DNA of 64,000 nucleotides from Lepidodermella squamata. Taxonomy: Eukaryota; Animalia; Gastrotricha. The stretch lies in NCBI GenBank assembly GCA_047495785.1, contig JBLDXI010000007.1, positions 310,001 through 374,000 on the forward strand, in the 5' to 3' direction. Below are positions 1,925 through 64,000 of this stretch, in pieces (the stretch's first letter is position 1; every line of letters starts with the position of its first letter). Made by a program: the position numbers and the translations under genes. The notes below the pieces were generated by a model that was not told the DNA's origin, did no database searches, and was given only the letters and a program-made list of their open reading frames with translations.

Positions 1925-2812
1925 TATAGTAAACAGTTTTATGAATTGTTTTTAATTTTTTTTCTCATAATTCTGTTGAATTAAATGTGATCTAATAGTT
2001 TATTATCACGACTAGCATTGCCCACGCGTCATTGGACAGCGCGTGGCAGCAAGATTTGGCGTCGATTATAATGATCATCGGTATATTGAGTGAGGTAAAC
2101 AAGTTATAACAGGCATCCAGGGTAATAAAATAATAATATGATAATCGCTTAATTCAACGCATCGGCGCCTACACTGTTTTGTCGACGATCACGCCTCTAA
2201 GTGTGGGTGGATATAATTATCCTAGTAATTTGCAGGCAGTTATAAATTTCCTGATCCAGATAACTCTTTTCACTCAATACAAAAAAATAACAGTTTATAA
2301 CAACAACAAATTTTAATCATGTTTTTTAAATGACCACCGCGATTATTACACCTGAGTTGTATAGCTCGGGCTCGCTGGCGCCTCGTGTGATGATGCGCTC
2401 TCAGACGCGTATAATTATGTTAAGAATCTCTGCCTCGCTAATACAAGCGTTACCACTCACACGCGCTCACGTTTTTTGTTATTTTATCTATATGTTTTTT
2501 CTCGTGTGTACTGCTGCCGCTTCGAAGCGAGTGATGTCATTCGCGCGCACCTGCGCTCATCACCACGCTTCTTTTGAAGTTTTTTTTTCATAACATACGG
2601 TTACGGCATGACTATCAGAAGTACTACTCTGCATTTCGCCATCCCAACTGACCGCCGTGGTCAAAGTGTTGGGTTTTTCTTCGCTCGTAAGAATCATTAG
2701 CCGCCGCTTAAGAAAAGGTGATGATAGATGCGCGTTAATTAAACGCATTCGCTCCCCCATACTATAACAATATTGTGTTGTCTCTTCACCTGCTATCCTT
2801 AGGTGAAAAAAC

Positions 2813-5800
2813 ATGCTTGGTCCGGCCAGCAGTTCGTTGCGACTGGCCGTTGTGGTCGCCGGATTCGTCTTGGCACACCTTTCGGCACCCGCTCTCGCCC
2901 GTGAGCTGTGAAAATGTCACATAATTGCGTTTATTTTTTTACCGTTCAACAGAAAATTATCTGTGCCTGCCGAACACCTACATCCCGCCTGATTTCGAAT
3001 TTAATTTACCCGACGCCAAGACCTTTCCTTTCGTCAATGCTGGTTTGCAGATTTTTACCGACTTGCAAATGCCGTGCTCAGGTAGGAATTTTTGACAATA
3101 ATCATTGATGTTTAAAAATAAACTATTAAATTGGACTAATTGATTAATAATTTCAAAATTAGGAAAAATAACCGATTTAACTTCAAAAATAATCAGCTAA
3201 ATTCAGCTTTCAGCTTTCATAATTTTTGTATATCAGGTCTCTTGAATAAATGGCAATTCGTGGCTCGAGTTGCGGTAGTCAAAGGCCTTAACTTGGGCGT
3301 GTTTCGTTGGAAGGATGCCAACACGATGACAATAGTCGGCGTGACGTCACTCGATGGCGTCGAAACTGGCATTGTTAACCAAACTGCGGCCTGGATCGAA
3401 GCCGAAATCCAACAGCCAATCGCCGTTAAACAAGGCGATATGCTAGGATTTTTCTACGACCGACTCGACATTTCCAGCTCGGAAATGGCTCTTCCGACGC
3501 GCCAGGTCGGCTTCTTGGCACCAGACTCTTTACCGCCGACCATTGTCCTACTTCAGGACAAAGCTACGATTGTCCGAAATGGTTTGAAATTGAGAGGAAT
3601 AACTAATCAAAGCTAATACGGGTTCATTTTTTGGTAGGCTTGATTTTCCTTGATCAATCTAATCGTGTCACCCGAGTTCCAGCCCTAGGAGCCGTCCTTA
3701 CTACGTCATCCAATGCCCCAGTTCAGAACCCTGACTCATTTGCGTCCTCGCTTCAGTGCCAAAGAGTCACTAGAATTCCGGAAAATCTGCCCACCGAAAG
3801 AGTTAAGGATTATCCATCAGCCGAGTCAGGTTTACAGGTAAAATCTAAAATGCCTCCTAGATTCGAAAATCTAGGTCAAATTTTCAGATTTTTACCAAAC
3901 TTCAAGTACCTTGCGCCGGCTATATTACTTGGTGGCAATTCATCTCCCGCAATGCGCAAATTATCGGCCTTCATTTAGGAGTTTTCCGGCCAGTCGATAA
4001 CAACGGCCTTCGTCTAATTGGGGAAACCGTCATAGAAAACGTCACAGCTGTCCGATACGTCGATCCTAACGATGGCTGGGTCAAGTATCCTGCTAACCCT
4101 CCAATTTCCGTGAAACCTGGTGATTTCTTAGGTAAAGATATAGGAACCTTTTCATCAGCTTCAAAAACTACCTTATAATGTAGGAATCTTTTACTCGAAC
4201 TTCCTGTCGTCCTCCGATGTCAGCATCGCTACTCGTGAAGATGCAGCATCTTTAGCCTATATCTATTTGAATGACGGCACATCGGTCAAAGTTTACAGTA
4301 GGTTCTTTCACCTAATTTCGATTCGATTTTTTTTATGTGTTCCTTTTAGCCACGTTGAACGGAGATGATGCTACCAGGGTTGGTCGATTGCCGTTGCTTT
4401 ACGCCTATGCCGAGTATCTGGACAATCCGCCGTCAGTGCCACCACCGAACCCTTGCCAAAGTACAACGTGCATGCCTCAGGAGTTCTGCGCCAGCTTGCC
4501 GCCAGCCAACTCGTTCAACTACTACGAGGCTGGACTTTCGGTGTTCACGTACTTGCAAGTCCCTTGCTCAGGCGTCCTCACCGAGTGGAAATTCGTCGTC
4601 AACAACTTTGTTGCAGTTTACGGCCTGCATTTGGGCATTTTCCGCCCGCGCGAGTCCGCACCTCGCTTGGAACTCGTCGCCGAGAATATCATCAATTTCT
4701 CGCCGTTCAACGGCAGTGATGCCAGTCTGGTCTGGGTGACTCGCCCGGCCGAGCCGCCGCTCCAAGTTCAAACCGGTGATTACATTGGCATGTTTTACGA
4801 GCGCATCAACTTGGACCAGAAATATCTGGCTATTCCGGCCCGGCGGAACACCCCAGATACGGCTAATATCCCGCCAACTCTTGTCTACATTGTAGATAAC
4901 TCGCAAATGAGTGTTAACAGTGAGTTTTCGAAATTATACCAAATTTCCACCAGAATACCAGATTAAAATTTCGAACCTCCCCCCGAACAAAAATGTCATC
5001 GCCATCATTTCGCCATTTTTTCGGAATTGCCTAATTGGCCTTAAAACATATCATAAATTTGCATAAAAAGAAATTAAAAAAAAATCCCGAAAAAAATTAG
5101 AAAACTAATTTGTGGAAAAAATCGATAATTTCCTGGTTTTTTAAATATATATGTTTCTGAAATTTCTGACATATTTTGGGTCTGGTGAAAATCTGGTGAA
5201 ATTATTGTTCGGATCAACTCGAAACACGAGTTTCCGTCGTCGAAAAGAGTCCCCCAGTTTCGAAGTCCCAAGTTGTGCAATAAGTCGGGAAATTAGGAGG
5301 TCAAGCTTTTAGCTTTCAATTTTTCGATATTTTTCGCCAATCGACTACACTGTTAAAATTAGAAATTACCGAAGAAGTCCCGAAAAAGTCCCGAAAACCG
5401 AATGGAAACTTGTTCGGTAGTTTTCGGTATTTTTGACGGGTTTTTTCCATTCCCATTGAAACACTTCATAGCTGATTTGCATTTTCATGACTTTTAAATC
5501 ACTCCCGCGAGGCACGAAATCGGAAACTGCCTCTCATTCTTGGATTTCGAACCTTTATCCCAGTATTTGCTTTACTTAAGAGAGATAGATACGGCGTATA
5601 GAAATTTTGATCTCCTTGCAATGCTGCTCAACTTTTTTGAATTCTTAATTTTGTAATCCAATTTTTCTGATAATCATTGAGTTTTGATTCCTAATTGATA
5701 GCAAGTTTTTTCAATTTTCTGTTATTTTCCTAGAGATTTTGGACACCACTACCGCGAGTCAAGATCGTCGTAAACCAGCGTTGATGGCTACGATAAGAAG

Positions 5801-8209
5801 CGGCGGCTACACTACAACTGTGCCACCAACTCGACCCCTGCCATCCACCACACCCTTTTATTTCACAACCCCGAGCCGGGCTACGACAACCACGACCCGC
5901 CCAACGACAACGACCACGACAACGACTACAACCACAACAACCACGCCTATCCCTACGACTACAACCACAACGCGACGTGTCATCACTGTAACAACATCGA
6001 GGACCCCATTGCCGAGGACTGCAACGGAACCGTTCACCGTGCCTATTACGGATACTCAACCGCCGTTTTTCACCATCACCACAAGGACAACGCCAACTAC
6101 AACCACGACTTTACCATGGGTTACTGACGACCCTAATAACTGGTTTACTAATACGATCCCGACAGTGACGACGCCGCGGCCGACTACTACTATCCGGTTA
6201 TTGACGACGCCGACCACTACGACTCCTGATCCTTGGGACAACACAGATGATCCTTGGTTTACTATTACAGATACTACGCCGAGACGAATTACTACTACGC
6301 CTCGTAGGATTCCGATTCCGATTACGACTACAATGGAGCCACCAACTGATGAGCCTGAGATACCCTGGTGGCTTACAACTCGTCCGATTACAACTAGGTA
6401 AGTCGAGAGGGAGCTTTTCTTATCAATTCTTACCTTATTTCATCGAATAGACGACTTACAACTGTCACAAGATGGTTTACCCCGAGTACCACGACTACAA
6501 TACCGGCGGATCAACGAACGACGTGGGTCAATATTCAGCAACAAGCTCAAAGCCGTGAGTTTTATAATGAAAATCTCTCGAAATAGGTTGAAAAAATGAT
6601 GTTGCCTTAGGTTGCAATCTTCAACCGGCGATTCCGCGTAATTGTTACCCGCAGCAGATGCGGTTTTTCTATGACTACTTTGGAGGCGTTTGCAAGAGTG
6701 CCATCGGCTGCCCGGATTTGACGACGGGTGAAACGAACAACTTTCAGTCATTGGCCGATTGCAATATTTACTGCTCACAATCGGGTACGCATTACTCTTT
6801 TAAATATATTTTCGCACCTCTGAAAGGTCAAGGGTCAAGATCGCTTCAACTTCAACCTCTTGATGCCCTATACACTAAATTAATACTAAGATAAATTGTG
6901 CGGCCAACTTGCGGCACCCTAAATTTTGACGATTCCAGCTTTAAATTTGGCCAAAAAATGGATTTTCTGAAAGTGATTCTCGATTTTAGAAACAGAATAT
7001 CTTTTAGCGGAACCAAATTTACGGTGAGCTGGAACCTAATTTGCTGGAGCGGAACCAAATTTGCATTTTGCGGAACCAAAGTCGAAATATACCTAGTGTC
7101 ACTGTTTGAATAATTCTACGAATTTTAGGCGAAGGATCATTTCTCAATTGAACACCCTACCTTATGGAGAATTTTGCGCTGAATTTACTGGTGTTTTTTC
7201 GAATTATTGTGGTCAATCTTCACCCGCAAGAATTATCCGAAAAGTGATTTCAGGCCACTAGAAAATTCCAAAAAATTTGGTTCCGCTCACCGTAAATTTG
7301 GTTCCGGTAAAAGGAAGACCCTTTTAGAAATTAGTGATTTTTCCAACATGAAAAAGAAAATTCCTAGATAACTCGGGGTTCCAAGTGGCTAAAATGAAAA
7401 AATCTTATGGCCATATCATTAACGTCGTTAAATAGTCGGATCTAAGCTTGTTCACCTTAGCTTTAAGGTGGCAGCAAAAGCGGCAAGTAAAACAGCTTAG
7501 TTTTTGCCTTTCACTCACGTGAAAACTACATGCAAACGCCCCTTTTACTGCCACCTTAAAGCTAATCTAAAAAGAAGAAAATCTAAAGAAGAAAATCTAA
7601 AGGAAAAAATGGAAAACCCCTAAAATTGAATATAGCGTTTGAATTTCGTGCTTCGGGTTTAGCTATAGCCACCGGTAAATAGGCCTAATAAAGAGATTTT
7701 TCAAGAAACTTGGTAATTCGAGTTTCGACAATAAGGACGCTTTTTGTACACATTTTTTAGCTGTAATTGAGGAGAAAAATTACTGCTAATTTCTGAAATT
7801 GAGCTATAAATCTAAGGAAATCTAAAGAAATTCTAAAGAAATGGCTCCAGTTTAGGGTTCGTTCGTATGGCTTGCCTGTGGCCATCGTAATTCGTTCAGG
7901 AAATTTCATCGTTGGAAAATGCAATCATTATCCTCATACGTTCACTTTTTAGACTTGACTCCTTTTTCAGAAGCTCGAGCCTCCGAGTGCTTCTTGTCTC
8001 CATCGGCGGCGCTGGTCTGCCCTGTGCCGACTACGCGCTACTACTACAGCATATCGTCGGGCGTTTGCGCGCCTTTCCTGGGCTGCGCCGCAACGGCCGG
8101 CTCGGCGAACAACTTCGCAACGTACAGCGACTGCGCGACCCGCTGCCGCGTTGTCAACCGCCAGCCCGGCATTGTCATCGAGCAGACGACGTTCTTTGCC
8201 AGGAAGTAG
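2813..8209 (+). CDS. G2: multi-exon secreted protein; signal peptide, 3x domain X, long Thr/Pro mucin-like stalk, 2 variant Kunitz domains
   Basis: ATG 2813 MLGPASSSLRLAVVVAGFVLAHLSAPALA; exon 1 2813-2900, intron 2901-2952. NAGLQIF..MPCSG, ESGLQ|IF..VPCAG and EAGLSVF..VPCSG motifs; Thr tract ~5810-6560; Kunitz exons ~6611-6784 and ~7953-8209; stop TAG 8207-8209. Confidence 0.85.
7001..7323. mobile_element. MITE/foldback-like dispersed repeat, copy 1 (in G2 intron)
   Basis: Left CTTTTAGCGGAACCAAATTTACGGTGAGC is the near reverse complement of GCTCACCGTAAATTTGGTTCCGGTAAAAG (ending 7313); second copy at 26856-27107. Confidence 0.75.
7467..7555. mobile_element. Very short TIR element flanked by TTAA (Kolobok-like MITE; class tentative)
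   Basis: TTAA|GGTGGCAGCAAAAG ... CTTTTACTGCCACC|TTAA; the palindromy extends into the flanks (7457-7565). Confidence 0.55.
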
Positions 8210-8516
8210 CCGCGCGCAACACGGCTACACGCAACATACCCGTGCAAATCTCGCTAACAGCTTTTTATAGCAAATTTTTAAAAATGTCTCTCTCTCTCAC
8301 GTTCTCGCTCCTGCTGCTTGTTACAAAAAGACTTGTATCAATGTTTTCGTGTTTCCGCTGTTTGCTCGTAAAAAGCTGAACTGCTAACAAACGTCCGGAT
8401 GATGATATCATGTGTTTGCATCATGAAATGCGATGAGTGTTTATTTTTCATAAAATAATAAAAAATATTACAAAAAAGACGCCTTAATTTTTTCGTCCGA
8501 AACTCGAATTCGCAGC

Positions 8517-11162
8517 ATGAAGAATAGGCAGATAATGGCGATTGTTTCTCTCGTCGCCATTTTCCGAAGATGTCTCGCAGGTAGCATACGGTTTCCTCTG
8601 ATGATGTAGTTCGCATAGATTTGAAAACAGATTCGAATTTATGTGCGGCTGGCAGCCAACTTCAAATACCCGAAGAGGAAGAATTTTACGAACAATCGAA
8701 TTCGAGGTTCCCATCTGCCGAAGCCGGACTTCAAGTTGGCAATAATTATCAATTAAAATTTCGATAATTTAACTCATTTTACAGATTTTCACAAACTACA
8801 GAATAAACTGCTCAGGTTAGTAAAATCTTCGAGGAAAAATAGATCGGATTTTTTTGTTGATAGGAATTATCACGAAATGGCGACTGATGGCTCGAACTGC
8901 CAACATAACTGGTCTCCACCTAGCTGTTTTCAGATTCCTAAGCCCTCAATTTTTGAAGCTAGTCGGCGAAGTTTACTATAAGAAACACCCATCTGGAATT
9001 ATCGATAACACCCCTAGTTGGATTACTTTGACTTTAGACCAGCCTCTTCGAGTTGAGGCTGGTGACGTAATCGGTAAGAATTTTACGACTTCCACTGGGC
9101 ATTAATTTCAGCTTTAATTTTGGGAAGGAATGTTTTACGATAAATTTACGACCCCTTCAAGTGTGATAGCTGTTGCCTCGCGAGTTTCCGGCGCCAATAA
9201 CACGATCGCCCTTCTGCTAGACAAAAGCCACTTCAAGAACAACAGTTTGAATTTGGATGATGGCCAAAAATGCTTATATTTTTTACTCTGAATTATTTTA
9301 GAAATGGTTTCCATTGTTGGAATACCGTTAATCGCCCGAACCCCAGCTCTGGGCTTTGTTCTCGAGGGTGACATGGATTCGTTTATAACTTCAGCCCCAG
9401 GGCATTGCGTAGCGTCTCGAAATGTGGCTGTTCCCGAGGGCTTCGTCGAAGATGACCCGGGGAACTATCCATTCGTCGAAGCAGGACTGCAAGCAAGCTA
9501 TTAAATTCGCCAATCTGATGTCTATATTGTGACTTATTTTTTTCAGATTTTCGCAAACTTGCAAATTCCTTGCACTGGGTTTTTGAAGGAGTGGCGTTTT
9601 GTAGTTCGCCCACCGGTGATTTTCGGCCTTCATCTGGCTGTTTTTCGTAAACGCGGGTACAACGCCTTTGATCTTATCGGCGAGACTTTGATCGACTCGC
9701 GACTAAGCAACATTACAGATTTCACTTACGGTAACTGGCTATCATTCGTGGCAGATCCGCCGATAGCTGTGATGAAAGGCGATTTTATCGGCATTTACTA
9801 CGACCAACTTAAAACGCGGGACGTTGTCCTAACTATTCCTAGTCGCTTGCCAAATAGGCAAAACTTCGAACGCGGGAAAGCTTTCGTCTTCCTTGCTGAT
9901 AGGAAATCCTTACTCAATTATACAGGTTATTCCTATGTCTTGATATTTGAATTAATCTTTCATAAGAAATTTTAGCTTTAAATGCTGCGACCAGCTTGTC
10001 CCTCGAAAGGATTCCGGCTTTATCGGCGGTTATAGGCGATCTTAAGACCCCGGTTACAACAACCTTGGGGCCTCAAATCTGCGAATCGAATGCCACTGTC
10101 CCAAATGATTTTAGAGACGGCCTACCATCGTCGAACCTTTTTGACCTCTACGAAGCTGGTTTACAGGTCTAAAAATCACACAAATTTCCAAATTTATCGG
10201 TTAATTTTATGCGCAGGTATTCAACTACATGAGAATTCCTTGTAGTGGTGAGATAGGATTTTTGTTATTTCATCGCCTTAATTTCGGATTTTATCATCCA
10301 GGAAAAATAGTTGAATGGAATTTTGTGAGCAAATCTCGCGTTGTTTATGGTCTTCACCTGGCCGTTTTTCGTAAAAATGAATTCGACACAACATTGGAGT
10401 TGGTTGGTGAAACAGCGCTGAGCTACAACCCAAGTGAAGCTGATCCTAATACAAAGGCCTGGATTACGCTGGCAGCGGATCCGCCGATCAACGTTAGGGC
10501 AGGGGATTACATTGGCATGTATTACGATAAATTGGAGACCAGCGACGAATTTCTTACCATACCAAGCACGAGTTACAACCAAGTGCTTTCTGACGGCAAA
10601 AAAGCTACTACCTACGTATGGCTAACAGATAAAACTAGCTTGGATAGAAGTAAGGAATAGCAATTTAATTTTCAAATATTTTTCAAAAATTTATTTAATT
10701 TATTTTAGATTTTGTAGACACCCTAGATGCTATTCTTGTAACTCGAGCTGTAGCCCTAGCTGCGGTTGTTAGGGCAAAAGACAGCCAATCAGACATTTTA
10801 GTCTCGGCCGAAGAGGATGACATAATTCCTATAAGGACATATCCAAGCCATACAGAACCACATATTACGACCCGAATGACTACGTCAGTCGCGATTGTTA
10901 CTCTAGGTGGCGTAGCTGCTCCTAAAACCGATCGTAATTTTTCATGAATTAAAGTTCCTGGCTATATAGGTTTTATTTTCGTTTAGGATGTAGCACAAGG
11001 AGACCAAAGGCCTTATCGAAGTGTGACTCGTGGCGGTTCAAATTTTCCTACGATCCTCGCATGAATGCTTGCCGTTCGTTTTGGAGCTGTGAAACGTCAG
11101 ATTTCGGCTTCTCAACCCGCTCGGAATGCCTGAAAACTTGCGCCGAGGCTTCACGCTTCTAG
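8517..11162 (+). CDS. G3: secreted protein; 3x domain X, short linker, 1 degenerate Kunitz-like domain
   Basis: MKNRQIMAIVSLVAIFRRCLA (exon 8517-8580). Three EAGLQ/GLHLAVFR/GD.IG sets; 31-nt mini-exons; GC-AG intron 9493-9546; last exon CSTRRPKALSKCDSWRFKFSYDPRMNACRSFWSC..GFSTRSECLKTC*; AATAAA 11267-11272. Confidence 0.85.
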
Positions 11163-11401
11163 TTATATTCGGTGAATTATTTTATATATAGGAACATTCA
11201 CGAATTGCTGTTAGCACGAGTTGCACCAGAACTGTCATGTTTTACTCAGCGGAGATAATTTAGAGCAATAAAAAGAGTATTCTCACGCGTGATGTTTTTG
11301 ATCTATGTAGTATAATATCGAACCTACGCGACAAGAAGGGTCGCGTGGGTGTTCCTTAAACGCAGAAAGCAACAGCTTCCAAAATTCTGGAAGGTAATAT
11401 A

Positions 11402-13822
11402 ATGGCAATCTCAAATTTTTGTATCATAATATTTCTAGCCGCAATTTCGCAGCACAAAACGGATGGTGAGAGTATCCTTATTTTTCCGAATCAATTTTAA
11501 AACTAAGCATCTTAGGAGCTCTTTGCGGTTTGAACAGCACCAGTCTGGTTCCAAACACCCCAGGATTCTTCAATACACCAGCTTCAAGCTATCCTTCAGT
11601 TGAAGCTGGTTTACAAGTATACTATTTTTTGTATGATTTTCCTCTACTTTATTTTCATTTTCCCTTCAGATCTTACAAAATCTTAAAATTAACTGCTCAG
11701 GTAAAATAATGAGATTTTCCGTTTTACGAGGCTAATTTATTTGTATCGGAAGGTCTGCTTACGAAATGGAAATTTATCGCAAAACAGCCGAATATCGTCG
11801 GACTTCACCTTGCCGTTTTCCGAAGTTTGCGATCAACCCATATGAAATTGGTTGCAGAGAGTGTTTTCGATAATGTGCCGTCTGGAATAAGTGATGGATC
11901 CCCAGCCTGGGTGACCTTGAACGCCGTTCCTCCCCTACTAGTCGAACAAGGCGACGTTTTAGGTCTATTTTACGAAAATATAGCCATCCCAAGTCGCCAA
12001 CTGACTGTTCCGTCCTCTTCTCCTAACGGAAACCGCGCCATTGTCCTACTTATGGACAACAGCCAGCTTGAAAATAACAGTTAGTGCGCAATTAAAAATT
12101 TGAAAAATTAAAAAAAAATCAATTAAAATTTTAGAGATTATCCCGATTTCGACGGCGATAATAGTCAGTCGCACGGTTGCCCTGGGTGCCGTAATTGAAA
12201 CTGACAATGACGCATACGTGACAGCTGCCCCTGGCTCGTGCTCATCAGTTCGAAATTATTCGGTTCCTGAGTCATTTCGAGAGCTGCCACCTCAAAGCTA
12301 CCCGTTCTCCGAGGCAGGTCTGCAAGTTTTCGCAAACCTAGAGATTCCTTGCAATGGTACGATTTTAATCTAAATTTATCAAGACAACTGATTTTATGTA
12401 TTAAGGCTTCATAACTCAATGGCGATTTCTTGCAAAACCGCCCGTCATTTTCGGGCTCCATTTAGCTGTTTTCCGAAAACGGGGCATAAGTTCGCTCGAT
12501 CTAGTTGGTCAAACTTATATCGATTCGAAGTTGACTGGAGCTAGCGCTGGGTCGGTATGGATGAATTATAAAGCTGATCGACCAATTCCAGTGAGAAGGG
12601 GCGATTGGCTAGGTAATATTTTTTTAAATAAAGTAGCGAAATTATAGAGAAATTATTATAAAACAGGAATTTTTTACGACAAATTTACGACAAAAGATAT
12701 GGTTGTAGTAGTTCCCAGCCGAGTTTCCGACGAGTCACTCCTAGAAAACGGCCTCACTTACGTCTATGTTGGCGATCGAAGTTCCGTTAATAACACTGGT
12801 AATTTTTCGTCCGTGTAATTTCACCCAGCTTAATTATTTCTTAGCATTACTAATTTCAAACGCATTGAGAGTTGATCGAGTACCAGCGCTTTCTGTGGTG
12901 GTCACTGATATTTCGGATCTGCAAGCAGGACCTACGACTTTCGGACCAGATGAGTGTCTAACGGACAACCCTGTCCCACCTGAATATTACCCGAATCTTC
13001 CGCCCTCAAGCCAATATGACCAATATCAGTCTGGACTTCAGGTTTGGTTTCTTTACGAATAGCCAAATGACCGATTATTTTTGCTTCTCAGATCTTCACC
13101 TACATGAAAATCCCATGCAATGGCACGTTGACTTGTAAAATGTCCTAATTCAGCTTTCATCCAATAATTTAATAGGTCAAATTACGCAGTGGAGCTTTGT
13201 CAGCAAGTCGAGAGTTGTTTACGGGTTGAATTTAGCAGTTTTTCGACTCGATTCTTATGACCCGGTTTTCGAACTGGTCAGCTCGACCTCGCTGACCTTC
13301 TACCCGGCAGACGCCGATCCTGTAACAAGACCGTGGATTTCTCGAGCCGTGAATCCTCCAGTCGACGTGAAAGCCGGGGATGTCATCGGTATAAATTTCA
13401 TCTCAAAAAAATGGTTTATACCAGAATTTCGACATAGGAATGTTCTACGACCGATTCCAAATGACCGATGAGTTTTTGACCATTCCAAGTACCGATCAGA
13501 CTAAAGTCCTCCAGGGTAGGACTGAACCCACCCTGGTGTGGCTGATTGACAGTGAACAGTTGAAAGGGAAAGGTTAGCTTCGGACCAACTTTTGATTCCC
13601 TCATCTAACGATTTTTTCCTAGCTTTTATCGACAGAAGGGAATCGCTGTCTGGAAATCGAGCTGCTGCGCTACGGGCGATGGTCAAATGTCCGGCGAAAT
13701 GCGGGCAAGCTGATGGCCAAGATACAACTACGGCAAGCGATTCGATCTGGGTGGGAGAGCCACTGACCGACATGCCGGTTGTTATTAATAACGACGACAC
13801 GCCAGTTGATGGAAGAAAATGA
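11402..13822 (+). CDS. G4: secreted protein; 3x domain X, short acidic tail, no Kunitz; tandem paralog of G3
   Basis: MAISNFCIIIFLAAISQHKTDG|gtgag. Domains collinear with G3 (PPVIFGLHLAVFRKRG; FVSKSRVVYGL); GC-AG intron 13123-13175; ends ..DDTPVDGRK*. Confidence 0.85.
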
Positions 13823-15007
13823 GCGATTGACCTTGATAATGGACTATTTTTTGTTGCTTGTATTTTCGTAAAATTTTTGGCTCGCCTCTTCATCCTCTAT
13901 ACGTATGGTATGGCAATTTGGTCGGATTAAATTAATTTATATGGTAGGCTCGAGACGTCGCTAAAGCACGCGGCAAGGTCATGTCAAATTAGGGCTCCGT
14001 AATGAATTGTAATAATTTTTTTTAACATGGGAGAGCCCAGTTGTTTTGCGCTTATAGGCAAACATGTGTAATTGGACCGGCCTAATGCTCCCGAATCGCT
14101 AATTACGTATGCGGCTTACGGCCTTTCGTGAGCTTAGGCAATCGCGGAGAGCGGCATTTGGCTGCCGTTTGTTTGTAATAACGTATGTAGTGGCAGTTAT
14201 TTTGATACTTGAAGAGCCACCTTAATATCAAGAAGCTAACACGCATAGGTGAGTGTTGACGCGGCCTCAGCATGCGTGCACTTCTGGAGTTTTTGCCGCG
14301 CTGTGATATAAGGGCGACGCGAGGCGAGGCTGTCATTATCATGAAAACATACGGCTCCATACACGATGGCTCATATAACAAAAAAATTACGCAAGCCCAG
14401 CGCAACTATATAGGAATAAATAAAATATATCATATTACGTGAATCGCGAACAAGACATTATATTAGACGAAACAACAAGCGCGTAATAGTATAGTGGCCA
14501 GCAGCTTTACGGCCACGAGGCGTTTATTATAATCATTAATAAATAAATAAAAAGATTTAAAAGCCTCACCGACTGACCATTTGTAATACAGGCGTGATAA
14601 GTTGCATCTTCATTTTTATATTATTAATATTGCGCTAATTACAAAAAAACTAGCTAGACAACATGGTCAAATGTTAAGTTGACGTTTGACACGACGCGAT
14701 GGCCGCTGTTAATGACTACAGAGGCGTTCAAGAAAAAAAGATATTATAGCCTGACACCGCTATAACAGAAATGAATATTCTGAAGTGTTAATTGTTTTCT
14801 TCTATATCATACTTGTCCATGTTGTTAATAATCATCGCATCTCTCCCACGTTTGCACCCATAACGTTTATATTTTCCTATTATTATAGGGAGTGGCTAAT
14901 TATATTACTGGTTAATTGATGTCAATGATATTATTCAAAATCTCAGTACTATTTGCGACGTTAGCCGTCGGCTCGTCTCAAGGTTGTTGAATCAATTAGT
15001 AGCGAAA

Positions 15008-17038
15008 ATGAGTCTCTTAATGACGCTTGTTTTATTTACTCTGTTTACGCATCAATCTCACGCAGACGACTTTTGCGAAGTAACTCGCCCATTCACAATC
15101 CCGCCCGATTTCCAACCAGCGCCTACTGAGGAATTCCCGTTCCTCGAAGCTGGCCTTCAAGTGAGTCGCAGCCATTCAAAACAACGCTGAAATAAAATGT
15201 TCGCTTATTTAGATTTTCACCGATTTGAGGATCCCATGTGACGGCTACCTTAAGGAATGGAGGTTCCTTAGCAAGAATAGCCTTATTATGGGCATGCATC
15301 TGGGCATCTTCCGCGAGGTGAGACGCGGCGAGCGGGTCAATATGAGACTCGTCGCCGAGACCATCATTGAGTCACTCTACGTCAACCGGACAACGCGTTG
15401 GCAGCGTTACCTCGTCGACCCACCTCTGCCTGTTAAGGCGGGCGATATTCTCGGTATGCCCATCAACCGAATCTGGGACATTTGTTAATTTTGGTTGATA
15501 TTATATAGGAATGTTTTACGACAGTTTTTACACCCTGCAAGACATGCTTGCAATTCCGAGTAAAGGAAATCGCAATTATTACGAGCCGAAAGTTGGAAAT
15601 GCCATACCGCCCAGTATTGTCCTAACATTCGACAACACGCAGCTATCACGCTTCAGTCAGTTGAAGATATCGCACCTGAAAATTTTACTAAGCTGAAATT
15701 TCCATTTCTAGAGGAATTTAACGTCGCTGGGGTGCATAGAGACTACCGTGTACCCGCGCTTACAGCCATGGTTGTTTCGAACGGCCTTAGGGTGGAACAG
15801 GTCACGCAGACAACGATTCGCTCCGTTGAGTTGGACTCAAACACCCTGCCGCCATGGCAAGCGACAATTAGCGGAAATGTCGCGGTTAACAATGACGTGC
15901 AACCGGCTCCAGTTGCGACTCGTCGCCAGCGATCCACGACTACTACCATTACGCCGATTGCTCCTTTAGTGCCGGTTCATCTTAATGATATTGCCACTAA
16001 TCAGGCGGCTGCTAATCAGGCAGCAGCTCAAGCTGCAGCTCAGGCCCAGGCCCAGGCTCAAGCTCAGGCTCAGGCCCAAGCACAAGCTCAAGCTCAAGCT
16101 GCGCAACAGGCAGCTGCTCAAGCTCCGCCCCCGCAACCCGTTAGACCAGTCCCTGCCCCCGCCCCAGCCCGGCCAGTTCCCATGCAACAGCAACAGCCAG
16201 CGAGGCAGCAGGAGCAATATTTCTCCCCACGTGAATTTACTAAAAATTACTAAAATTTAACACCAATTTTTTCGGAAATAGGTTGCTTCAACCCACCCAC
16301 AGCGTTGCAGTCCTGCTACTCTCCATCAGTTCGAGCCTTTTTCGATTACAACACTGGGTCTTGTAAAACATTTTACGGCTGCGACTCGCCTGTTAACGAT
16401 CCTAATAACTTCGCATCTTCCGATGAATGCAACAGGGCTTGTTTGCTCATGGTCCCTTACATTCCTAATATCTCTGGCCTCCGCGCTACAACCCAGTCTC
16501 CATTCAGCTTCGACATGCCTGAAATTAGTAATTTTTTCTTGGTTTTTTTTATAATTTTTCAAATTTTAAATTCGAATTTAGGTGTATCAAACTTCTTGCA
16601 ACCAAGCAATACAAATAATTTCCTACCTCAAGCAACGAATTCTCAATCTCAAGCCGCCTTATTTCCTCAACTAAGTCGAAGCACAAGCATCCCATCTTAC
16701 TGTTTCGACGCCCCGAGTTCGCTAGTTTCCTGCTCGAACATCGGCCCGCGTTACTACTACGAATCTTCAGCCGGAGCTTGCTACTCATTCTACGGCTGCT
16801 CGCTCGGCGAAAGACAGGGCAATAACTTCGATACCGTTGAGCAGTGCCAACAGGTGTGCCGCGTCTCCAACCCGCCCGTCCCAAGACAGGCGCCGGCCAA
16901 CACCCCACCGCCGACTACAACCACGACCACAACAACGACAACAACAACAACAACACCTCAGCCGATTGCGCAGTTCATGAACCCATTCTCGTTATTTATG
17001 CCGAACGGCTTCGGCCAAAACCAGGGGTACCTCCAACC

Positions 17039-17070
<32 letters not shown>

Positions 17071-17264
17071 AGCCGTTACAGCAGGTGGAAGCAAGGCCGC
17101 GGACGAGTCTTCGAATGCAACAGCAACCTCTTAGCAACAATGGATACCTCAGTTTAGACAACCAGCCTAATATGTTCAATAACTTTGCGAGTTTTCTCGC
17201 TCCTGGCATGCCTCGTTCTGTTGGCGTGTTGCCAAATAACCTCAATCAAGGATCAAAAAAGTAA
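15008..17264 (+). CDS. G5: secreted protein; 1x domain X, Ala/Gln repeat, 2 variant Kunitz domains, poly-Thr, poly-Gln and N/F-rich tail
   Basis: MSLLMTLVLFTLFTHQSHA..FPFLEAGLQ|IF..IPCDGYLKEWRF..MHLGIFR; Kunitz CKTFYGC and CYSFYGC; an in-frame-looking intron (~16529-16581) is hidden inside ORF 16305-17264. Confidence 0.85.
16002..16123 (+). repeat. Coding low-complexity repeat (QAAA)n/(AQ)n in G5
   Basis: [39 protein letters not shown], with synonymous variation among codons. Confidence 0.9.
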
Positions 17265-23328: not shown

Positions 23329-23591
23329 ATACACGAATCCCAAGTGGCCAATTGCCCGCCCACTGCCTTCATGCTGACAGTAAATAAGTTGCTGCATCAT
23401 GTCATCATGCTGCAACATGAACTAAATTGATGTAACTTGGAGCATTGATGCCTGCTAATTACCCTATTTTGTTATAGGCACACACTATCACGATGATTAA
23501 CCTAACGACTGTCGCAGTTTTAGCGCTGGTTCCATGCCTTGTGGCTGGTGAGTTGCTTTACAAAATAAATCGCAATGAATTGCAACATTGA
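23329..23591 (+). repeat. Near-identical duplicate of G9 upstream region + exon 1 + start of intron 1 (27966-28257)
   Basis: ATACACGAATCCCAAGTGGCCAATTG...GCAATGAATTGCAACATTGA at both loci; the G9 copy has a short extra internal segment. Confidence 0.95.
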
Positions 23592-28158: not shown

Positions 28159-29971
28159 ATGATTAACCTAACGGCTGTCGCAGTTTTAGCGCTGGTTCCA
28201 TGCCTTGTGGCTGGTGAGTTGCTTTACAAAATAAATCGCAATGAATTGCAACATTGAACCTTTCAACCAGCTCAACAACCGTCAAATCAGTGCTCGAATT
28301 CGAGAGTTTTCGTGCCGCCAGACGCGAATGACACAGCGCCGTATCCGTTCCAAGAATCCGGTCTCCAGATTTTCACGAATCTCATTATACCCTGTGATGG
28401 TAACAAAATTTCACCAGCAATTTCCCAAGTTTTATCTCATTCCCAATAACAGGAAGCCTTATTGGCTGGAGCTTCCTGCCTGGTCAGCAGTACATACTTC
28501 AGCTTCACTTGGCCGTTTTTAGGCAACGCGCTGATAAAATGTACCAACAAGTTGGCGAGACTTACATTGATCTTAAACGGGGAAATACAAGTGAAGTCTC
28601 AACTTTCCCTGCGATACCTACAATCCCAGTTATGGCCGGGGACGTCATTGGTTGGCTTTATTAAAAAAATTCCGTTCTCATTTTTTTAGAAACTTTCTAG
28701 GGATGTACTACGACAACTTTGCGAGCTTGAATGGTCTTTTAACAATCAAAAGCAACAAATTGCCTAATAATGGCGCGAATCTGCCGACCTATGTTCACCT
28801 GTGGGATCGACCCCTCCTAGCGGCCCGGAACTGTTTGTTACCTAATTTCACAAAATTTCGATTTATTATTTTTGAATTTTTCTAGATTCGGTTGATGTGG
28901 CTACTGCTTCAAAAGAGTCAGTTTTAGGTCGATTTTACATCCAGTTTTACGAGACGATTTTTTAGTTACCGAATTCCCGCTCTTGTTGCGGTTGTTGAGC
29001 CGTCTTTTGCTCCCCCGATCGATATTATACCCACCCTGCCCGCTGTTACTACCTCAACGCGTCGTCCAACGCCCGTCCGCACAAGACCTATGACGACGAC
29101 TCCAGAGCCGACTACGACAACTGAGACTGCGACTACGACGAGGCGAATTATGTCGCGCCGAACAACGACTCGACGGGTGACAACAACAACACGCAGGCAA
29201 ACCAGCACCAAGAGCGTCACACCTGTTCAGGGTATAATTGCCTCAGATTACCCGGATTGGCCTGATATTACTGACTTCACCATTCGCTTTATCGGAACCA
29301 CAAAAGCCAGCACTTCCACGGTTACGAACATGCCGCCTGTTATCTCTTCTGCATCAAGTTCGATCTTTAATACTAAGTTGAGATTTTTTGTAATTTTTCA
29401 AAATTTATTATAGGGTGCATGCAAGATCCAACGTCAGCGCTATTTTGCACCGCACGACAAGTTCGCGCGTTTTACGATTCTGGAACGGGAGTTTGCCGCG
29501 AGTACTTCGGCTGTCCGACATCTGTAGATCAAGGCAACAATTTCAAATCGGCAGCTGAATGCCGAAGCGTATGTACCGGCGAGCAGCAGACTAATGACGA
29601 CGGTTTGTCCCGTTTTTCTATAATTAAGGAGGATTTGTTCAATATTTTTGTTGTCAATAGTTTGCAAGCGTACTCCAACTGCGTTGGAAGTTTGCTTTGA
29701 GAAATCTATTAGGTACTTCTACAATCCGACGAAGCAAGCTTGCATGTCGTTTTACGGCTGCTCGCTCGGAGGCCTGCCAGGCAATAATTTCGACTCATTG
29801 CAGCAGTGCAATCGGTGCAAAGGTCAAGTTGTATTGACCCCGGTCCAAGGCAGTAACGCGCCGCTACCCGTGCCGGCCTCGTCGTCGCAAATTTTTTACC
29901 AGCCAGCCCCGGCTAACTCGATAGTCTACCAAGCACCAGTCGGCCAGAACAATTTTATATTGAGCCAATAA
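28159..29971 (+). CDS. G9: secreted protein; 1x domain X, Thr/Arg-rich stalk, 2 variant Kunitz domains
   Basis: MINLTAVAVLALVPCLVA|; YPFQESGLQIFTNLIIPCDG; LHLAVFR; DYRIPAL; Kunitz CREYFGC and CMSFYGC. Confidence 0.85.
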
Positions 29972-46559: not shown

Positions 46560-48180
46560 ATGAAGATAGCTGCTATTCGGTTTTCATTACTGGCCGCTTT
46601 GATTTGTACAATTCATCATATCAAAGGTTCGGCAACTTTATATCAATCAAATTTAGTGATAATTCCTACAATATTTTAGGCGAACAATGCCCGTCCGAAG
46701 AAACTCAAGTTCCGAGAAAGGTCAATTTCGATACCGGGCCGGGCGAGTTCGAACTCATGGAATCTGGCCTACAAATCTACACCCATATCCGCGTATTTTC
46801 ACCTAAAACTCTCTTATTAATGATTTTTCGGCCTTCGTTCTATTTCCCAATAGATCCCATGCGATGGCTGGCTTGAACGTTGGAAGTTCATGGTTGGGCC
46901 CGATCACATTGTAACCGGGTTGCATCTCGGCGTGTTCCGGCCGCGTCAGCCCGATGTTTTCGAGCTTGTAGGCCGGTCGCATTTTGTCATCATGCCAACC
47001 CCGCCTAATACAACGTGGATAAGCCATGCTGTTAAGCAGCGCATAGCCGTCAAAAAAGGCGACTGCCTCGGCATTTTCTACGACAAGTTCGAAACACCCG
47101 CCAAACAATTGACCATCCGGTCGAAACTCCTGCCTGACAGCTATGTTACCCGAAATTTTCCGACTTACGTTCTGGCGATGGATGAAAGCCACCTAGCGCT
47201 GAATAGGACTGTTGACGTTAGCTCTGCTACCCGCGATTTTCGAAGCCCAGCGCTTGCCGCGGTAATTTCCGACTTCGCGCCACTTCCTATGCTATCAGCT
47301 CGAAGTGGCTCGAAAAATAAACAATTTTCGATAACTGCACCTGGCGAGTACTTCAAATCAGTCGAAAAGGCGTTGTTTCAGAAATCCCTCGCCGCAAAAA
47401 CAGCTGCCCAGGCTCAAGACCCGCCCCCGATCGCGCCATTGCTTTCGAAACCCGGCTATATCAACAAATGCGACGGCCCGACAAAGGTCCCATCCGACTT
47501 TGCGAAGCTACCAGTTGAGCGGTATCGATTCGCCGAGACAAGCCTTCAGATTTTCACATCAATGGCCGTTGAATGTGACGGCTATTTATCAGGCTGGCAT
47601 TTCCTAGCTACAAATGACGTAGTTGAAGGTATCCATCTAGCCGTTTTCCGCCGACGAACCTACCAAGCCCCGCATTTGTTGACCCTCGTCGATGAGACTC
47701 ATGTTGTTAATATGAAACCGCCATCACGGGGCGCGAGGGGCTTCTGGGTGACCTATTTACCTGGCAAGCCGTTGTCAGTTAAGGCGGGTGACATTATTGG
47801 ACTTTACTACGACGACTATCAAACGCCGCGAGAGATGGCGTGTATTTTGTCCCAGGCCGATGAGGAACTGGGCATTTTTGGTCGGCCGAAATCTCCTCCA
47901 ACCTACGTTCTCCTTATGGACAGCAATACTCTCAGCGTGAACGGTAAGATGTTTGCTAATTTTTTATATTTAAATTTTAAAATTTTATTAAATTTTTAAA
48001 TATTTAAAAAAAATTCAAATTTTATTCAAATATTTAATTTTTTAATTTAATTTTTTTTTAAATTTCCCATTTATAGATACCGTTGACATTCGAGATGCGG
48101 CGAAAACTCACCGCCTTCCAGCTCTCTCGGCTACAATTGAGCCAATTGGCTATTTTCGCGGCAGGAGAATCATGAAATAA
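46560..48180 (+). CDS. G16: secreted protein; 2x domain X only
   Basis: MKIAAIRFSLLAALICTIHHIKG|; ESGLQIYTHIR|IPCDGWLERWKF; ETSLQIFTSMAVECDG; final exon ..HRLPALSATI..RRIMK* (TAA 48178-48180). Confidence 0.85.
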
Positions 48181-49905
48181 CGTTTAAACTTCAGCTTTAA
48201 TAGTCCTTTTTAACAATAATATTGTGGCTATTTATTTACATATTATAACGAAGCAAAAATCTGTCTTGCTCACGGTGAGAGAAACAAATCGATCAATGAC
48301 TTTCTACTCGAAACTTGTAGATAGCTACTTTATCAGTCCAAATTTAATAACAATCAACCAAAAAAGCTTGGGAAAAGAATAAAAATTTGTTTCGCATGAA
48401 AAAAAGTTTCTTTTTATTATCGCATTTCAAGTACCTTTCCCGCGGAATTTCTGAGCGACGCCGGCGAAAAACAATTTTTATTAATAGAATAAACATTCAG
48501 GCGACTTGAAATAAAAACGGCGCAGAATGTGCGTTAAGTCGAAATATAAAAATAATGAATAAAAACAGGCTCAAGTGTCTGCGAGGTGTGTAACCCTTTG
48601 TTATGGAAGCAACGGGGCCAGAAAACAATAAAACCGCGTTTTGTGTGTTCGCCGTTTTCGCGCGACGGAAGAGCCGGCGCGCGCCTTTTCTTCTATTGCC
48701 TTGCTAATTTCATCTATCGACAGGTACCACAGGTATTCGGAACGGCGCATGAGCAGGAAAAATAACAAAATTATAACTAATAACACGGCCTTTTTTCAAG
48801 CTCTCACGACTCGAAAACCAGGTAAATATCACTGAATGTATAATATAACAATGATGCACTATTAATTTGTATATTTGTTCTGCGCTTATGTGTATATATC
48901 AATAATTATATTAGCAGCTAAAATAAGTATTGTCGTTGCGCATCATTTTTGTTGTCCGGCCCTATACCTGAGAAGCATCGACCATTCACTGTTAATATTG
49001 CATTGAAAATACACAAGTTGTGGATAGATTATTTGCGCAAAAAGAAATAAGTTGTATTGAGCGAGCGCGCAGGCCTCTCGCGCCCATCGAAGCGCGAGTA
49101 AAAACGAACGTGAAAAACGGCGCGGTAATAACTTGTTTCGCATAATAAATATCGCCTTCTTCAGCCTCTCCTGCTCCTTCATCTCGCGCCATCATTATCA
49201 GCATCTTCACAGCGACTGTCGTAGTCTTTCTCGCGCACGTTTTAATTATTGATAATCTACCCAGATTTTTCGCAGCAATTTAACCGGCAAACAAACGCCC
49301 TAATGTAAACACAACACGCGGTGGGACAAAAATTTCGCCCGCACCCTATTGAAAACATCTCACGTCGCGTCTTCTTGTTTTGCTTCATTGCCTCCGCGAG
49401 AGAAAATTCGGCAAGCTCGGCTGCGTAAAAAAAATTCAATTTTCATTAAAGTTTCGCCCTAATATACCTGTTGGCGGGTTTCAATGAGATGACTCCTGCT
49501 TGCAGGTTAATTTTGAAAATTACACGCGCATTGTTTGTTTGTCGCGCTCATATCGATATGATAAAACTTAATATTTCGCCAGCTCGGAAGTTGCGCGCTT
49601 TTGTTGTTTGATCCCGTTTTTGTTGACAGACTCCGATTTTATGCACCGCGGTTAACTTCCGACTCGGATGAATCAGCTTTCATCTATCAGCTGGTAAATA
49701 AAAGGGATTGCCCCATCTCATCCCCAAATAAATGCATAATCACGCAATGGCCAACTTTTTTCTTTGATTTTTTCGTATGCATTACTAATTATAAAAATGC
49801 ATATTTTATAACATTTTATTTGTCAACAGCAATTCACCGCTCTCACGAAATTTGACGCAATTTAATTCTTATTCAGGCTCTTTTTTACATGAAAGATATA
49901 AAATC

Positions 49906-52900
49906 ATGCGATCAAGTTTTTACCTGTTTGTCATATTCATGACTTTCGGCAGAAGGGCCCAAGCTACACAGTCTATAGGTAAGCTAGACCATCGTAGGTT
50001 TCTCAAAAAATTTAAATATTTTTTAAATAAAGAAACGGTTAAAGCTTGCTCGCTAAATGAGTCATCCGTCCCTTCTAACTACACCCGATATGAGGGAGCA
50101 AGGTATCCTTTTACGGAAGCCGCTCTTCAATTATACACACATCTTCAGGTATATGAAAACTATCTCTAATTTCCTAATTAATTTAATTTCAATTAATCAG
50201 GTTAGCTGTGATGGTCAACTCGTAGAATGGCAGTTTGCGACCCGAAATAAGTTGGTCTACGGCCTTCATCTTGGCGTTTTCCGCCTTAATACGGGCGAAG
50301 TTTACTCTCTAGTCAACTCGACCTACATCCGCCTTAATGCTGTCCGCAGTTCAAAGCCTGGCCCGCAGTGGGTCAGTTTTGTCCCAGCAGAGCCGTTCCC
50401 TGTCCGTAAGGGCGACATCCTCGGCATATTTTACGACAAATTTCGAACACCGAAAAAGTTACTAACCATCATAAACGCAGGTCCTCAAACCCGCGAGGAA
50501 AGGCCTAATACGTTTGTTTTCCCCGTTGGGTTGACTGAAATGCCGGCGACTTATCGCGATTTCGAAAGTTTGAAACTCCGCATTTCGAAAGCAACAGCCT
50601 TCGAGTACCGGGACCCGGCGTTAACTGCGATTATCAAGCATAACGTGGCTGTTCCTAGGTCGGCGAACAGGCCTGTCGCTGCCCCTGTAGCACCTCGAAA
50701 GCCAGTGCTGAGATCGACAAAATCTACAACCACTACCACTACTACTTCAGTAGCTACAAGATCTAGAAGGCTACGGAAGACGACTACAACTTCATCGACC
50801 ACTACTCAAGTACCTTACGAGTGTTCTGCTAAGGACGAAATCGTTAGCCCATTCGGCAAGTCGTTTGCCAGTATGAGCACGACAGCGTTTCCTTTCCTCG
50901 AATCTGGATTGCATGTCTTTCAAGAGTTGCGAGTACCATGCCGTGCTTATTTAGTCGAATGGACTTTTTTGATCCCGCAGCGGCATCGGATGGTCGATGA
51001 CCTCCACCTAGCCGTATTCCGACCGACTGATGCGATGAATACAGGGTTTAGAATCGTAGGTGCGACGCATATCCCGCCGCTTCCGCTAGATCGGTCTAAA
51101 TCTGGAGATTGGCTGTCATTTGTCCTCTCCCCGCAGCAACGGATTCTTGTGACGAAAGGCGATTATCTCGGCTTCTACTACACTCAGTTCAGCACAGTTT
51201 CAAAGGCGTTAACAATCCTTACCACGAATGAAGTTGGAAATTCGAATGCTACAACTTGGGTGTTTGAGTACGACAATAGGACCCTTTCAGCGGCTAGCGC
51301 TCGGGAAATAACGTTGAATGCTCAAAAAGCGGATAAAACCAAACGAAGGCCAGCTCTTATTGCCAAGTTGAGCTTTGATCTTCAATCAGCGACGGTACCT
51401 TCGAGTGATACGACTACGATGGAGCTGTCGATAAATTCGAGAGTTCCAGGCAGAAGGCGGCGGCCTACGTCGACATTGGAGCCTGTAACCTCACCCACCA
51501 CTACCCCAACGACTAAAACAACTACAATCAAAAAGATGACAACCCCAGAGCCGCAACATATGGTTAGGATTTAGCTTCTAATATAGATTATTTTAATTTC
51601 AATTTTGTTTAGAAATTTTTGAATGTCGTTGATAAAGGTAGAACGATCTGCAGCTTTTATCGAACGACTACGACGATTGTAGGCTTTTTTAAGGTGGCTC
51701 AAGACTAGGCATAAAGTTCGTTTTTTTCAGCTCGAGTTTAGTACGGAAGACGAATGCATTGACTTCGCTGGGGATAATCAAAAAGAGTGCAATGGTCTTG
51801 ATAACAGTTTTGGGGCCTGCGTTGCAACCTCAGCAGACTGCGGTCGAATCAAATCAACCCTGGTAACGCAATTATCTATCCCTATTAATATATATCTTTA
51901 TAATTTCCTATTTTTTAAAGTATGCACGGCACGATTCGAGCGGAGATTGTCAAAGCAGTGTCGACAGTTATTTCAATTCTTGCATCCATCGAAATGCGAA
52001 AACAGGCACTACGTACTGCGCCCCGCTTGTTCACGGGTCTTTGGGTTGCTTTGTCAACGAAGACATGTGCCAAAGGGCTGGCAACGCGTCCATACCTCCC
52101 CTCGAAAAGCCGCTGAAAGCTAAACCCCGAAGAAGTCGAATTATAACCGCGAATACCAATGTAAATTTAAGGATTTTCTAATAGGTAATTCCTAATTAAT
52201 AGAAAATTCTTATTCCAGGTCTATATGAATGTAATGGAGAAGGGAAAAACGATTTGCAGCTATCATCCTTCAGCAACCACCATAGTAGGCTATATTTCAA
52301 TTTTATGAAATTAAAAATGGCGGAATTTTTCCATTCAGTACACCTTCGCAACATTGGATAACTGTCTATTCTTTGTTGGGGTGAGTTTTCGATTTGGATT
52401 GGCCTTAATTTTTCCAAATTTTTTTGTTCATTGAAATAGAACAACACAAAGATGTGCGAAGAGGAGATATCTGGCCTAACAATTTGCGTTGATAAGAAAG
52501 CGGAATGCAGTTTGCTTCAATTGAAAACGGTAACGTGACTTGAAAATCCGGCAAAATTATCGATGATTTTAAATGAAATTTAGACTGAAATTTTTGATAC
52601 TTCGGAGGAATGTTATGCTGAAATCGATAGTTACCACAACTCGTGTTTGCACTCCGACGATGAAACTGGCGACATCTTCTGCTCCCCGGTGATGTATCAC
52701 GCAGAGGTAGCACCTATAGCCCTAAATTAATCACCCTTTTCCTAATTTTTCATTCAAGGTTTGCTACATCGACAATGCGGCTTGTTTGCTGGATAGACAA
52801 AGCCGGCTGATATCCGGAAATCGAGCAGCTGAATTGAATAAAACATCCCACAAGTCGTCTAAAAGATTGAAAACAGGCGAGACTGACCTTAGCAGTCAAG

Positions 52901-53641
52901 ATTTCCAAGCAACACAGATAACCTATTTAAACCTAATCTCTCGAGGAATAACTGTTTGCGAAGCTAAAAGTAGCAACGCGACCTTGGTAAGCTGAAGAAA
53001 AAAATTATTGAAATTTTGACCTCTCCTTTCGCAGACAACTTTTGCAGATCTCCAAAGCTGTTTAGACTTCTCTGGGGTATGTTCTTTTAGCATTCGTTTT
53101 TTTCTTGATTTTCTTGCCAATTTTATAGGACAACAGAAAAGTTTGCGGGGAAATAAATGGCGATTTCGGAGCTTGTGTTGACAGTAAAGCTGACTGTACG
53201 ATTATTGGTGCAATGCCGGTAAGATTTGACCCAGGTTAAATTTGAAAATTTTCAATTCTTTTTAATTTTTGTAGTTCCGAACTCATCCTACTAACACTGA
53301 TTGTGCTGCAGAGGTTGACAAGTATTACGTGAGTGAATGGTTTTGTTCGCCGTAAAATTTGACCCATTTTTTAATGAATAGGCCACGTGCATCCAGGTCA
53401 AGCCAGATGGCAAATGGTTCTGCTCAACAATGGCGAAAGACTCTATTGTATGTGTATCATCACAATTATTTACACAGATATTTTTTTCATCATAATGTAC
53501 CTATCTATCTTGCAGAGTTGTTATCAAAGCGATGTAACTTGCCAGGCTGCGTTCGAACAAGCGCATAACCGCAGCATGATGCATGGGAAAAGTCCGGCGA
53601 ATAGTCTATCATTTTTAACGGCATTTTTTCGGCACCGCTGA
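49906..53641 (+). CDS. G17: secreted protein; 2x domain X, Thr/Arg linkers, 3 tandem copies of a 10-Cys module
   Basis: MRSSFYLFVIFMTFGRRAQA; large exon 50201-51562; then a chain of small phase-0 exons (51613-53641) that splice into one open frame ending ..TAFFRHR*. Confidence 0.8.
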
Positions 53642-54175
53642 TGAGGGACGAAAAGTGGAATATTCAAACACCTGTTGTGATAAAGAAATGCTCGAAAACA
53701 TGCCGTATGTAAATACGTTTCGTGGCCGGAATAATTATTCTCTCAAAACTTTTGTACGAAAAACGCGTATATCTTTTCATAATCTTAATCGATTCATAAT
53801 CGTTGGAGAAAGCGGAAATTTTTCATTAAAACCAGCGTTGTTTTTGCTACTTGTGTTGCTGTTTTGTTTGTATAATCTTGTGGCAACGACGTGTTAAGAG
53901 CGGAGACACCAAGCTCGAGTCAGCCATTTTGATAGTACTAAGAAAGATTACACGGAAAATGATGAGGGTTTCAAGTGACAGCCGCAGAAAATATGCGTCG
54001 ACTGCGTATTTGTTTTTGAATTTCAGACGCGGCACCACTTAACAGCTTTAACAGACAATGCAGCGAGCCGGCAAAAAGCCCCGAAGCGCGCCACGCGACG
54101 CCACTCGCTCGCTCATCGCCGCCTTATCCATGTACAGGCCATTTTACACGCTACATTATTTCCGCCGCCGAAATC

Positions 54176-63961: not shown

Positions 63962-64000
63962 GTGAGTTTTCGGAGCCGAATAATTAGCCTATTAGGATAA

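Follow-up and report, generated by a model that had tools for sequence, protein, structure and literature searches.

What is the protein domain that recurs through a 64,000-nucleotide stretch of the Lepidodermella squamata genome (contig JBLDXI010000007.1, positions 310,001 to 374,000; hereafter the window), and what kind of protein do the genes carrying it encode? Translations of the window show six-cysteine Kunitz-like units, long Thr/Pro runs and a recurring set of short motifs. An earlier note, made by reading the sequence, had described the motif set as a beta-rich repeat, domain X, with 31 copies, two near-invariant cysteines and variable loops on a conserved scaffold. We find that domain X is a real module of ~175 residues with two cysteines, belonging to a family that lies outside Pfam 2025 and the PDB and is unnamed in NCBI records. 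The family is new; its fold and its way of use are already familiar.

A two-cysteine module present in 31 copies

Two hidden Markov models (HMMs) were run on every stop-to-stop piece in all six frames of the whole window, one built from five single-exon copies of domain X and the other from a 108-sequence family alignment (A2). Both recovered the same 31 domain X cores, all on the plus strand (core E ~1e-9 to 1e-48), in agreement with the number proposed earlier, and no minus-strand piece was found in the six-frame search at i-E 0.05. The long open reading frames of the window are also confined to the plus strand, each of them split into short pieces, and the G+C content is even (40–44%). In many copies the breaks between pieces recur at shared positions of the domain profile, namely behind PCxG, behind GDxxG and just ahead of the last strand. 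Such shared break positions are the pattern that would be expected from duplicated intron-bearing units.

The motifs that defined the repeat are all present, in order and with few substitutions, in the three copies encoded by gene G2, described below. Examples from copies 1, 2 and 3, respectively, are GLNLGVFR, GLHLGVFR and GLHLGIFR; PIAVKQGDMLGFFYD, PISVKPGDFLGIFYS and PLQVQTGDYIGMFYE; and, on the last strand, RVPALGA, RLPLLYA and RKPALMA. Exactly two Cys columns are conserved, occupied in 25 of 25 and 29 of 30 aligned copies (of 31), and both cysteines are retained in most distant homologues. Judging from this conservation, the domain is probably stapled by a disulfide that joins the N-terminal Cys to the one in PCxG. 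The R of FR, the V of PIxV and the D of GD are invariant among the window copies. Length variation among the 31 copies falls where variable loops had been proposed: after FR, before the conserved W, where the insert has a median of 4 and a maximum of 8, and between LTI and TYV.

Gene G2 carries three copies behind a signal peptide

The coding part of gene G2 (2813-8209, plus strand) was assembled as 11 exons from spliced contigs together with frame and splice-site inference. The joined exons form a single open frame of 956 codons, and the 956-aa product consists, in order, of a signal peptide, three domain X copies, a Thr/Pro mucin stalk of ~235 residues and two Kunitz domains. Each of the ten introns is GT..AG. 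Over 2400-8399, contigs from the public runs X2 (guessed to be RNA) and X3 skip seven GT..AG intervals that contigs of X1, the probable source DNA run, do not skip. The seven joints correspond to 3582-3637, 4132-4183, 4298-4349, 4920-5733, 6398-6450, 6555-6610 and 6785-7970. An eighth intron of 50 nt (3838-3887) is backed by the loose end of a contig that resumes at 3888, and the introns at 2901-2952 and 3082-3236 were inferred from frame and splice sites, with one X2 contig stopping at 2900. G2 is spliced and therefore expressed.

The signal-peptide exon, MLGPASSSLRLAVVVAGFVLAHLSAPALA (2813-2899), was read by eye as a hydrophobic core followed by A-x-A. The HMM places domain X copy 1 at 2964-3699 (residues 34-208), interrupted by the introns at 3082-3236 and 3582-3637; copy 2 at 3757-4411 (residues 228-394), interrupted by those at 3838-3887, 4132-4183 and 4298-4349; and copy 3 at 4454-5795 (residues 409-584), whose last strand, RKPALMATI, lies beyond the 814-nt intron 4920-5733. 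The interval originally assigned to the repeat, 2965-5795, thus runs from the first Cys of copy 1 through the last strand of copy 3. Counted between these same two landmarks, copies 1, 2 and 3 are 175, 167 and 176 residues long, and the introns at the domain X break positions are mostly phase 1.

Translation and a composition scan locate the Thr/Pro-rich mucin-like stalk at 5802-6553 (residues ~587-819, intron 6398-6450). Kunitz domain 1 (6613-6774) is divergent, matching PF00014 at E 1.2e-3 with 19.5 bits against a cut-off of 21, and Kunitz domain 2 (7988-8146) matches at E 4e-8 with 33.8 bits. Nine Kunitz sites were scored with PF00014, the two in G2 and seven further ones; five exceed the cut-off of 21 (23.2–34.4 bits), the remaining four score 18.2–20.4 bits, slightly under it, and the six-Cys Kunitz spacing is present at all nine in the feature map.

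Two other features were seen within and just beyond G2. Inside the intron 6785-7970, positions 7001-7313 hold an element of ~313 bp that resembles a miniature inverted-repeat transposable element, its ends forming imperfect inverted repeats of ~42 nt (83% complementary). It is a non-autonomous repeat of very high copy number: summed X1 contig depth reaches 11,000–15,000 over this element versus ~55 to either side, and rearranged joints are numerous. Shortly past the G2 stop (8209), an X2 contig starts at 8350, preceded by 21 T, which could be the polyadenylated end of a minus-strand transcript or an assembly artefact.

An unnamed family of several invertebrate phyla

Single copies of domain X gave no match in Pfam-A, and no match at E <= 10 was obtained for 17 window copies or for 108 family segments. 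PDB sequences compared with profiles of 17 and of 108 sequences gave chance matches only. The comparison with well-described domains thus yielded neither a Pfam model among the 108 segments nor a PDB sequence. A profile search of 1.84 billion representative proteins, the wide search for relatives that the earlier note had called for, returned 272 at E <= 1e-3 and 79 at E <= 1e-10, and all 272 are without an informative family name. Word-seeded protein searches with alignment A1 and with one copy gave no matches, the method being too insensitive for this family.

The closest relatives are unnamed products of metagenome contigs with the same layout, in which domain X directly follows the signal peptide; one of them, P0012, combines domain X with two Kunitz domains. 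Another relative, P0002, shares 53% identity with the window gene at 46890-47999. The proportions of nonsynonymous and synonymous differences in this pair are pN 0.33 versus pS 0.85, and because silent sites are saturated only the crude relation pN < pS is usable. For this one gene pair, the relation indicates constraint on the protein sequence.

P0002 (L001, 3488-4786) has an unbroken frame of 432 codons, whereas its counterpart in the window (46560-47999) has at least one intron after the PCxG exon. The difference suggests intron gain or loss between related species.

Among the more distant relatives, species labels exist for proteins of the nemertean Lineus longissimus, the molluscs Babylonia areolata and Haliotis asinina, the sea star Patiria miniata and the hemichordates Glandiceps talaboti and Ptychodera flava. 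All are called 'uncharacterized' except one 'polycystin-1-like' protein of Ptychodera flava (P0120), in which domain X (residues 213-320) stands immediately ahead of a WSC domain. In a 3,207-residue protein of Patiria miniata (P0036), five domain X units alternate with five F5/8 type C domains over residues 297-1706, and VWD/C8/TIL and SUEL lectin units come after this alternation. Across the relatives the partners of domain X include Sushi, ApeC, astacin, CUB, Kringle, C-type lectin, F5/8C, SUEL lectin, WSC, VWD/C8/TIL, LamG_3, AbfB, collagen/cEGF, PAN and HRM. These partners are extracellular modules, many of them sugar-binding. Domain X, found beside such varied extracellular partners, is therefore a mobile extracellular module of several invertebrate phyla. 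Unnamed clusters from sponges and annelids are further indicated by a language-model feature search. The only bacterial match looked up, P0075 from Micromonospora, looks like a compositional false positive, consisting of eight short stretches with scattered implausible Pfam matches, and it was not counted.

These data bear on whether the array is functional at all. Were the array made up of duplicates in decay, or artefactual and due to low-complexity or repeated DNA, this might account for the failure to detect the C-terminal piece of the copies at 21244, 30895 and 43093, and the exon models of most genes besides G2 are approximate. The window copies, however, are only ~25–42% identical in pairwise comparison, yet they keep intact frames, the two cysteines and the strand motifs. 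Moreover, pN lies far under pS in the comparison with P0002, the family is conserved across phyla, and the spliced transcript-like contigs already contradict such an explanation for G2. We regard a nonfunctional array as scarcely credible.

The predicted fold is a jelly roll

AlphaFold2, supplied with the 108-sequence alignment, modelled the copy at 50822-51412 with a mean predicted local distance difference test (pLDDT) score of 92.5 and a predicted template-modelling (pTM) score of 0.88. The model is an all-beta jelly roll with 13 strands and three short helices, in keeping with the beta-rich sandwich foreseen from the alternating sequence pattern, and every motif listed for the domain falls on a strand. 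It supersedes an earlier model from 17 paralogues, in which the all-beta core was confident and the rest poor (pLDDT 62.7). Variability mapped onto the model is much lower in the strands than outside them, with a column entropy of 1.83 bits in predicted strands versus 2.60 elsewhere (Mann-Whitney p = 2e-6).

Foldseek returned no PDB entry at E <= 1e-3 for the domain X model. In structural alignments, the model has the two-sheet antiparallel jelly-roll arrangement of CBM32, F-lectin and F5/8C structures and the same fold as residues 335-497 of Cwp84 (PDB 4ci7). Matches in a viral model library are mostly actinobacteriophage minor tail proteins. A shape search of the ESM Atlas placed a sponge family member first (TM 0.70/0.79), followed by unnamed actinobacterial and phage proteins, and the structure matches also include PHR, IFT25 and SUN domains. 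As modelled, domain X is a jelly roll whose shape class is galactose-binding-domain-like, or lectin-like.

The named members of this shape class differ from domain X in sequence and setting. Cwp84's lectin-like domain (PF18560; PDB 4ci7, 4d59) is bacterial and packed on a protease domain, and domain X gives no PF18560 match at E <= 10. Its calcium site is formed by Leu339, Glu448, Lys460 and Asn487, and its authors caution that this 'lectin-like' domain is without the usual sugar site and that sugar binding is unproven (PMC4089489). The CBM32, CBM6, F-type lectin and F5/8 type C domains are smaller than domain X (~130–150 residues) and have no sequence similarity to it. The PHR domain (PF08005; MYCBP2, BTBD2) is intracellular and protein-binding, unlike domain X, and likewise has no sequence match.

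The phage fold matches include residues 477-689 of Douge gp20 (PDB 8zdp) and residues 216-415 of a 610-residue Bxb1 tail-tip chain (PDB 9d93). We take this chain, 9d93_Pa, to be Bxb1 gp29 by length alone (617-aa gene, 610-residue chain). Bxb1 gp29 (617 aa, annotated 'tail spike') and eight diverse homologous segments from further mycobacteriophages were combined into a nine-segment profile and compared with A2. The hhalign alignment spans 66 core columns with a score of 33.1, P 1.4e-4 and a probability of 52%. It equates G-x-I-x-W, a strand of the form hydrophobic-V-aromatic-R/K, LVG with LVH, and PI...GD with PI...AxD followed by an aromatic residue, which are the equivalences implied by the structures. 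The score exceeds those of all 100 column shuffles (maximum 21.9) and of the reversed profile (10.4), with the qualifications that the shuffle control ignores strand periodicity and that the phage target was picked for its fold match. The A2 profile against the single gp29 sequence gave P 0.059. These comparisons are suggestive of remote homology between domain X and the mycobacteriophage tail jelly roll. The same core aligns profile-to-profile, at a sequence identity of 10–13%, but the phage domain has neither Cys and sits inside a trimeric fibre, not behind a signal peptide.

The earlier note had gone further, proposing from the strand pattern that domain X resembles bacterial DUF4082 (PF13313) domains and would be a jelly roll of that type. 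The jelly-roll part of this proposal is supported by the predicted fold and the structural matches; membership in DUF4082 is not. In the language-model feature search, DUF4082 ranks with the nearest of the named clusters, scoring 0.79 for a window copy and 0.87 for a distant hemichordate copy, but both lie under the 0.9 line, only 118–141 features are common, and the similarity was rated a mere lead. In hmmscan, PF13313 matched none of 17 window copies and none of 108 family segments at E <= 10. Nor does Pfam detect DUF4082 in the phage tail proteins that supply, or are similar to, the best fold matches, and a route to DUF4082 through them was rejected when Bxb1 gp23, gp25 and gp29 and seven Che8 tail proteins were found to be without PF13313. 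It is improbable that domain X is a eukaryotic member of DUF4082, although a distant superfamily relation may exist.

A putative binding head on a mucin-like stalk

We propose that in several invertebrate phyla the domain X family was shuffled as a module into mosaic proteins, both secreted ones and receptors, and that in this animal tandem duplication would have amplified it into an array of co-oriented expressed genes. The products, predicted from their sequences to be secreted, would carry one to four domain X copies at the tip and a Thr/Pro stalk open to heavy O-glycosylation; in roughly half of the genes, one or two C-terminal Kunitz-type domains would be added. The conserved strands would make up a rigid sandwich, and contact with the ligand, which would most plausibly be a glycan or another polymer surface, would be made by the three loops that vary in length and differ from one paralogue to the next. 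Between the binding head and the Kunitz end the stalk would act as a spacer, and the Kunitz domain, or a second head in Kunitz-less genes, would be tethered to whatever domain X binds. By analogy with its shape class and its partners, we infer that domain X is a putative binding head whose most likely target would be a glycan or a polymer surface. We put the probability of this account as a whole, with a domain X head, a mucin stalk and a Kunitz domain or second head, at roughly 60%.

Several points weigh against it. Glycan binding is one among several functions of the fold class, and PHR, IFT25 and SUN domains bind proteins. In the modelled copy, the invariant residues W47, R67 and D114 could be structural, forming a buried triad and not a site. 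The Kunitz domains are divergent, several of them under the Pfam cut-off, so that inhibitor activity is not assured. The assignment of run X2 as RNA is a guess, and the spliced contigs reveal splicing, neither tissue nor level.

Domain X might instead be a structural, self-associating matrix module of a secreted gel, cement, egg coat or cuticle layer, with no foreign or glycan ligand; the mucin stalk would then supply bulk and the Kunitz domains would shield the matrix from proteases. The mucin-like multivalent architecture, with one to four domain X copies per chain, fits such a role, as does a homologue, P0077, that joins domain X with collagen repeats and cEGF. The diversification of the loops among paralogues suits varied ligands better than a single self-interaction, and the frequent partners of domain X are lectin-type. 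A matrix role is accordingly a minority possibility in our judgement, though one to be taken seriously.

A bolder version of the binding-head account would make domain X the recognition head of diversified invertebrate lectin-type receptors, of common descent with the jelly roll by which actinobacteriophage tail fibres bind receptors. Its loops would provide a specificity repertoire for microbial or prey polymers, and the Kunitz domains would act as effectors, giving 'lectin-guided protease inhibitors'. We consider this combination speculative and rather unlikely.

The presence of 31 copies in 64 kb marks domain X as a major component of the secreted proteome of this animal. With a domain X profile, several hundred 'uncharacterized' proteins of molluscs, nemerteans, echinoderms, hemichordates and environmental eukaryote contigs would be annotated for the first time, and the annotation would reach the tip of a hemichordate polycystin-1-like receptor and the repeat units of giant lectin mosaics. 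If sugar binding is true, domain X would be a new animal lectin family, and if the tie to phage tail fibres is true, an animal extracellular module would be linked to a binding module of prokaryotic viruses. Domain X would still be one more beta-sandwich binding module of a familiar class, and no new principle.

Organization of the remaining array

Chained HMM matches, the feature map and Pfam Kunitz matches place the other 28 domain X copies, in ~18 more genes, at 8624-63960 on the plus strand. The feature map thus holds ~20 co-oriented domain X genes, a number that, like the gene boundaries, is approximate except for G2. Up to ~45 kb the genes have one to four domain X copies, a mucin stalk and one or two Kunitz domains, and from 46.5 kb onward the layout is X-mucin-X; no Kunitz pattern was found in the feature map of these downstream genes. 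Two sub-families therefore lie side by side in the window, one at 1-45400 with one or two terminal Kunitz domains and the other, X-mucin-X, at 46560-64000. Signal peptides of the downstream genes lie near 46560, 54176, 56584, 59783 and 63330. As a candidate identity for the domain X genes, oikosin-type house proteins were considered and rejected: the Oikopleura house proteome names no Kunitz among the oikosin domains (PMC3390340).

Two signal-peptide exons 4.7 kb apart, at 23493-23531 and 28159-28197, are near-identical (MINLT[TA]VAVLALVPCLVAGELLYKINRNELQH). Between the domain X copies and the Kunitz domains of one gene, the segments 15732-16253 and 16305-17264 contain long Ala-Gln, poly-Gln and poly-Thr coding runs, and this linker differs chemically from the Thr/Pro stalks of the other genes.
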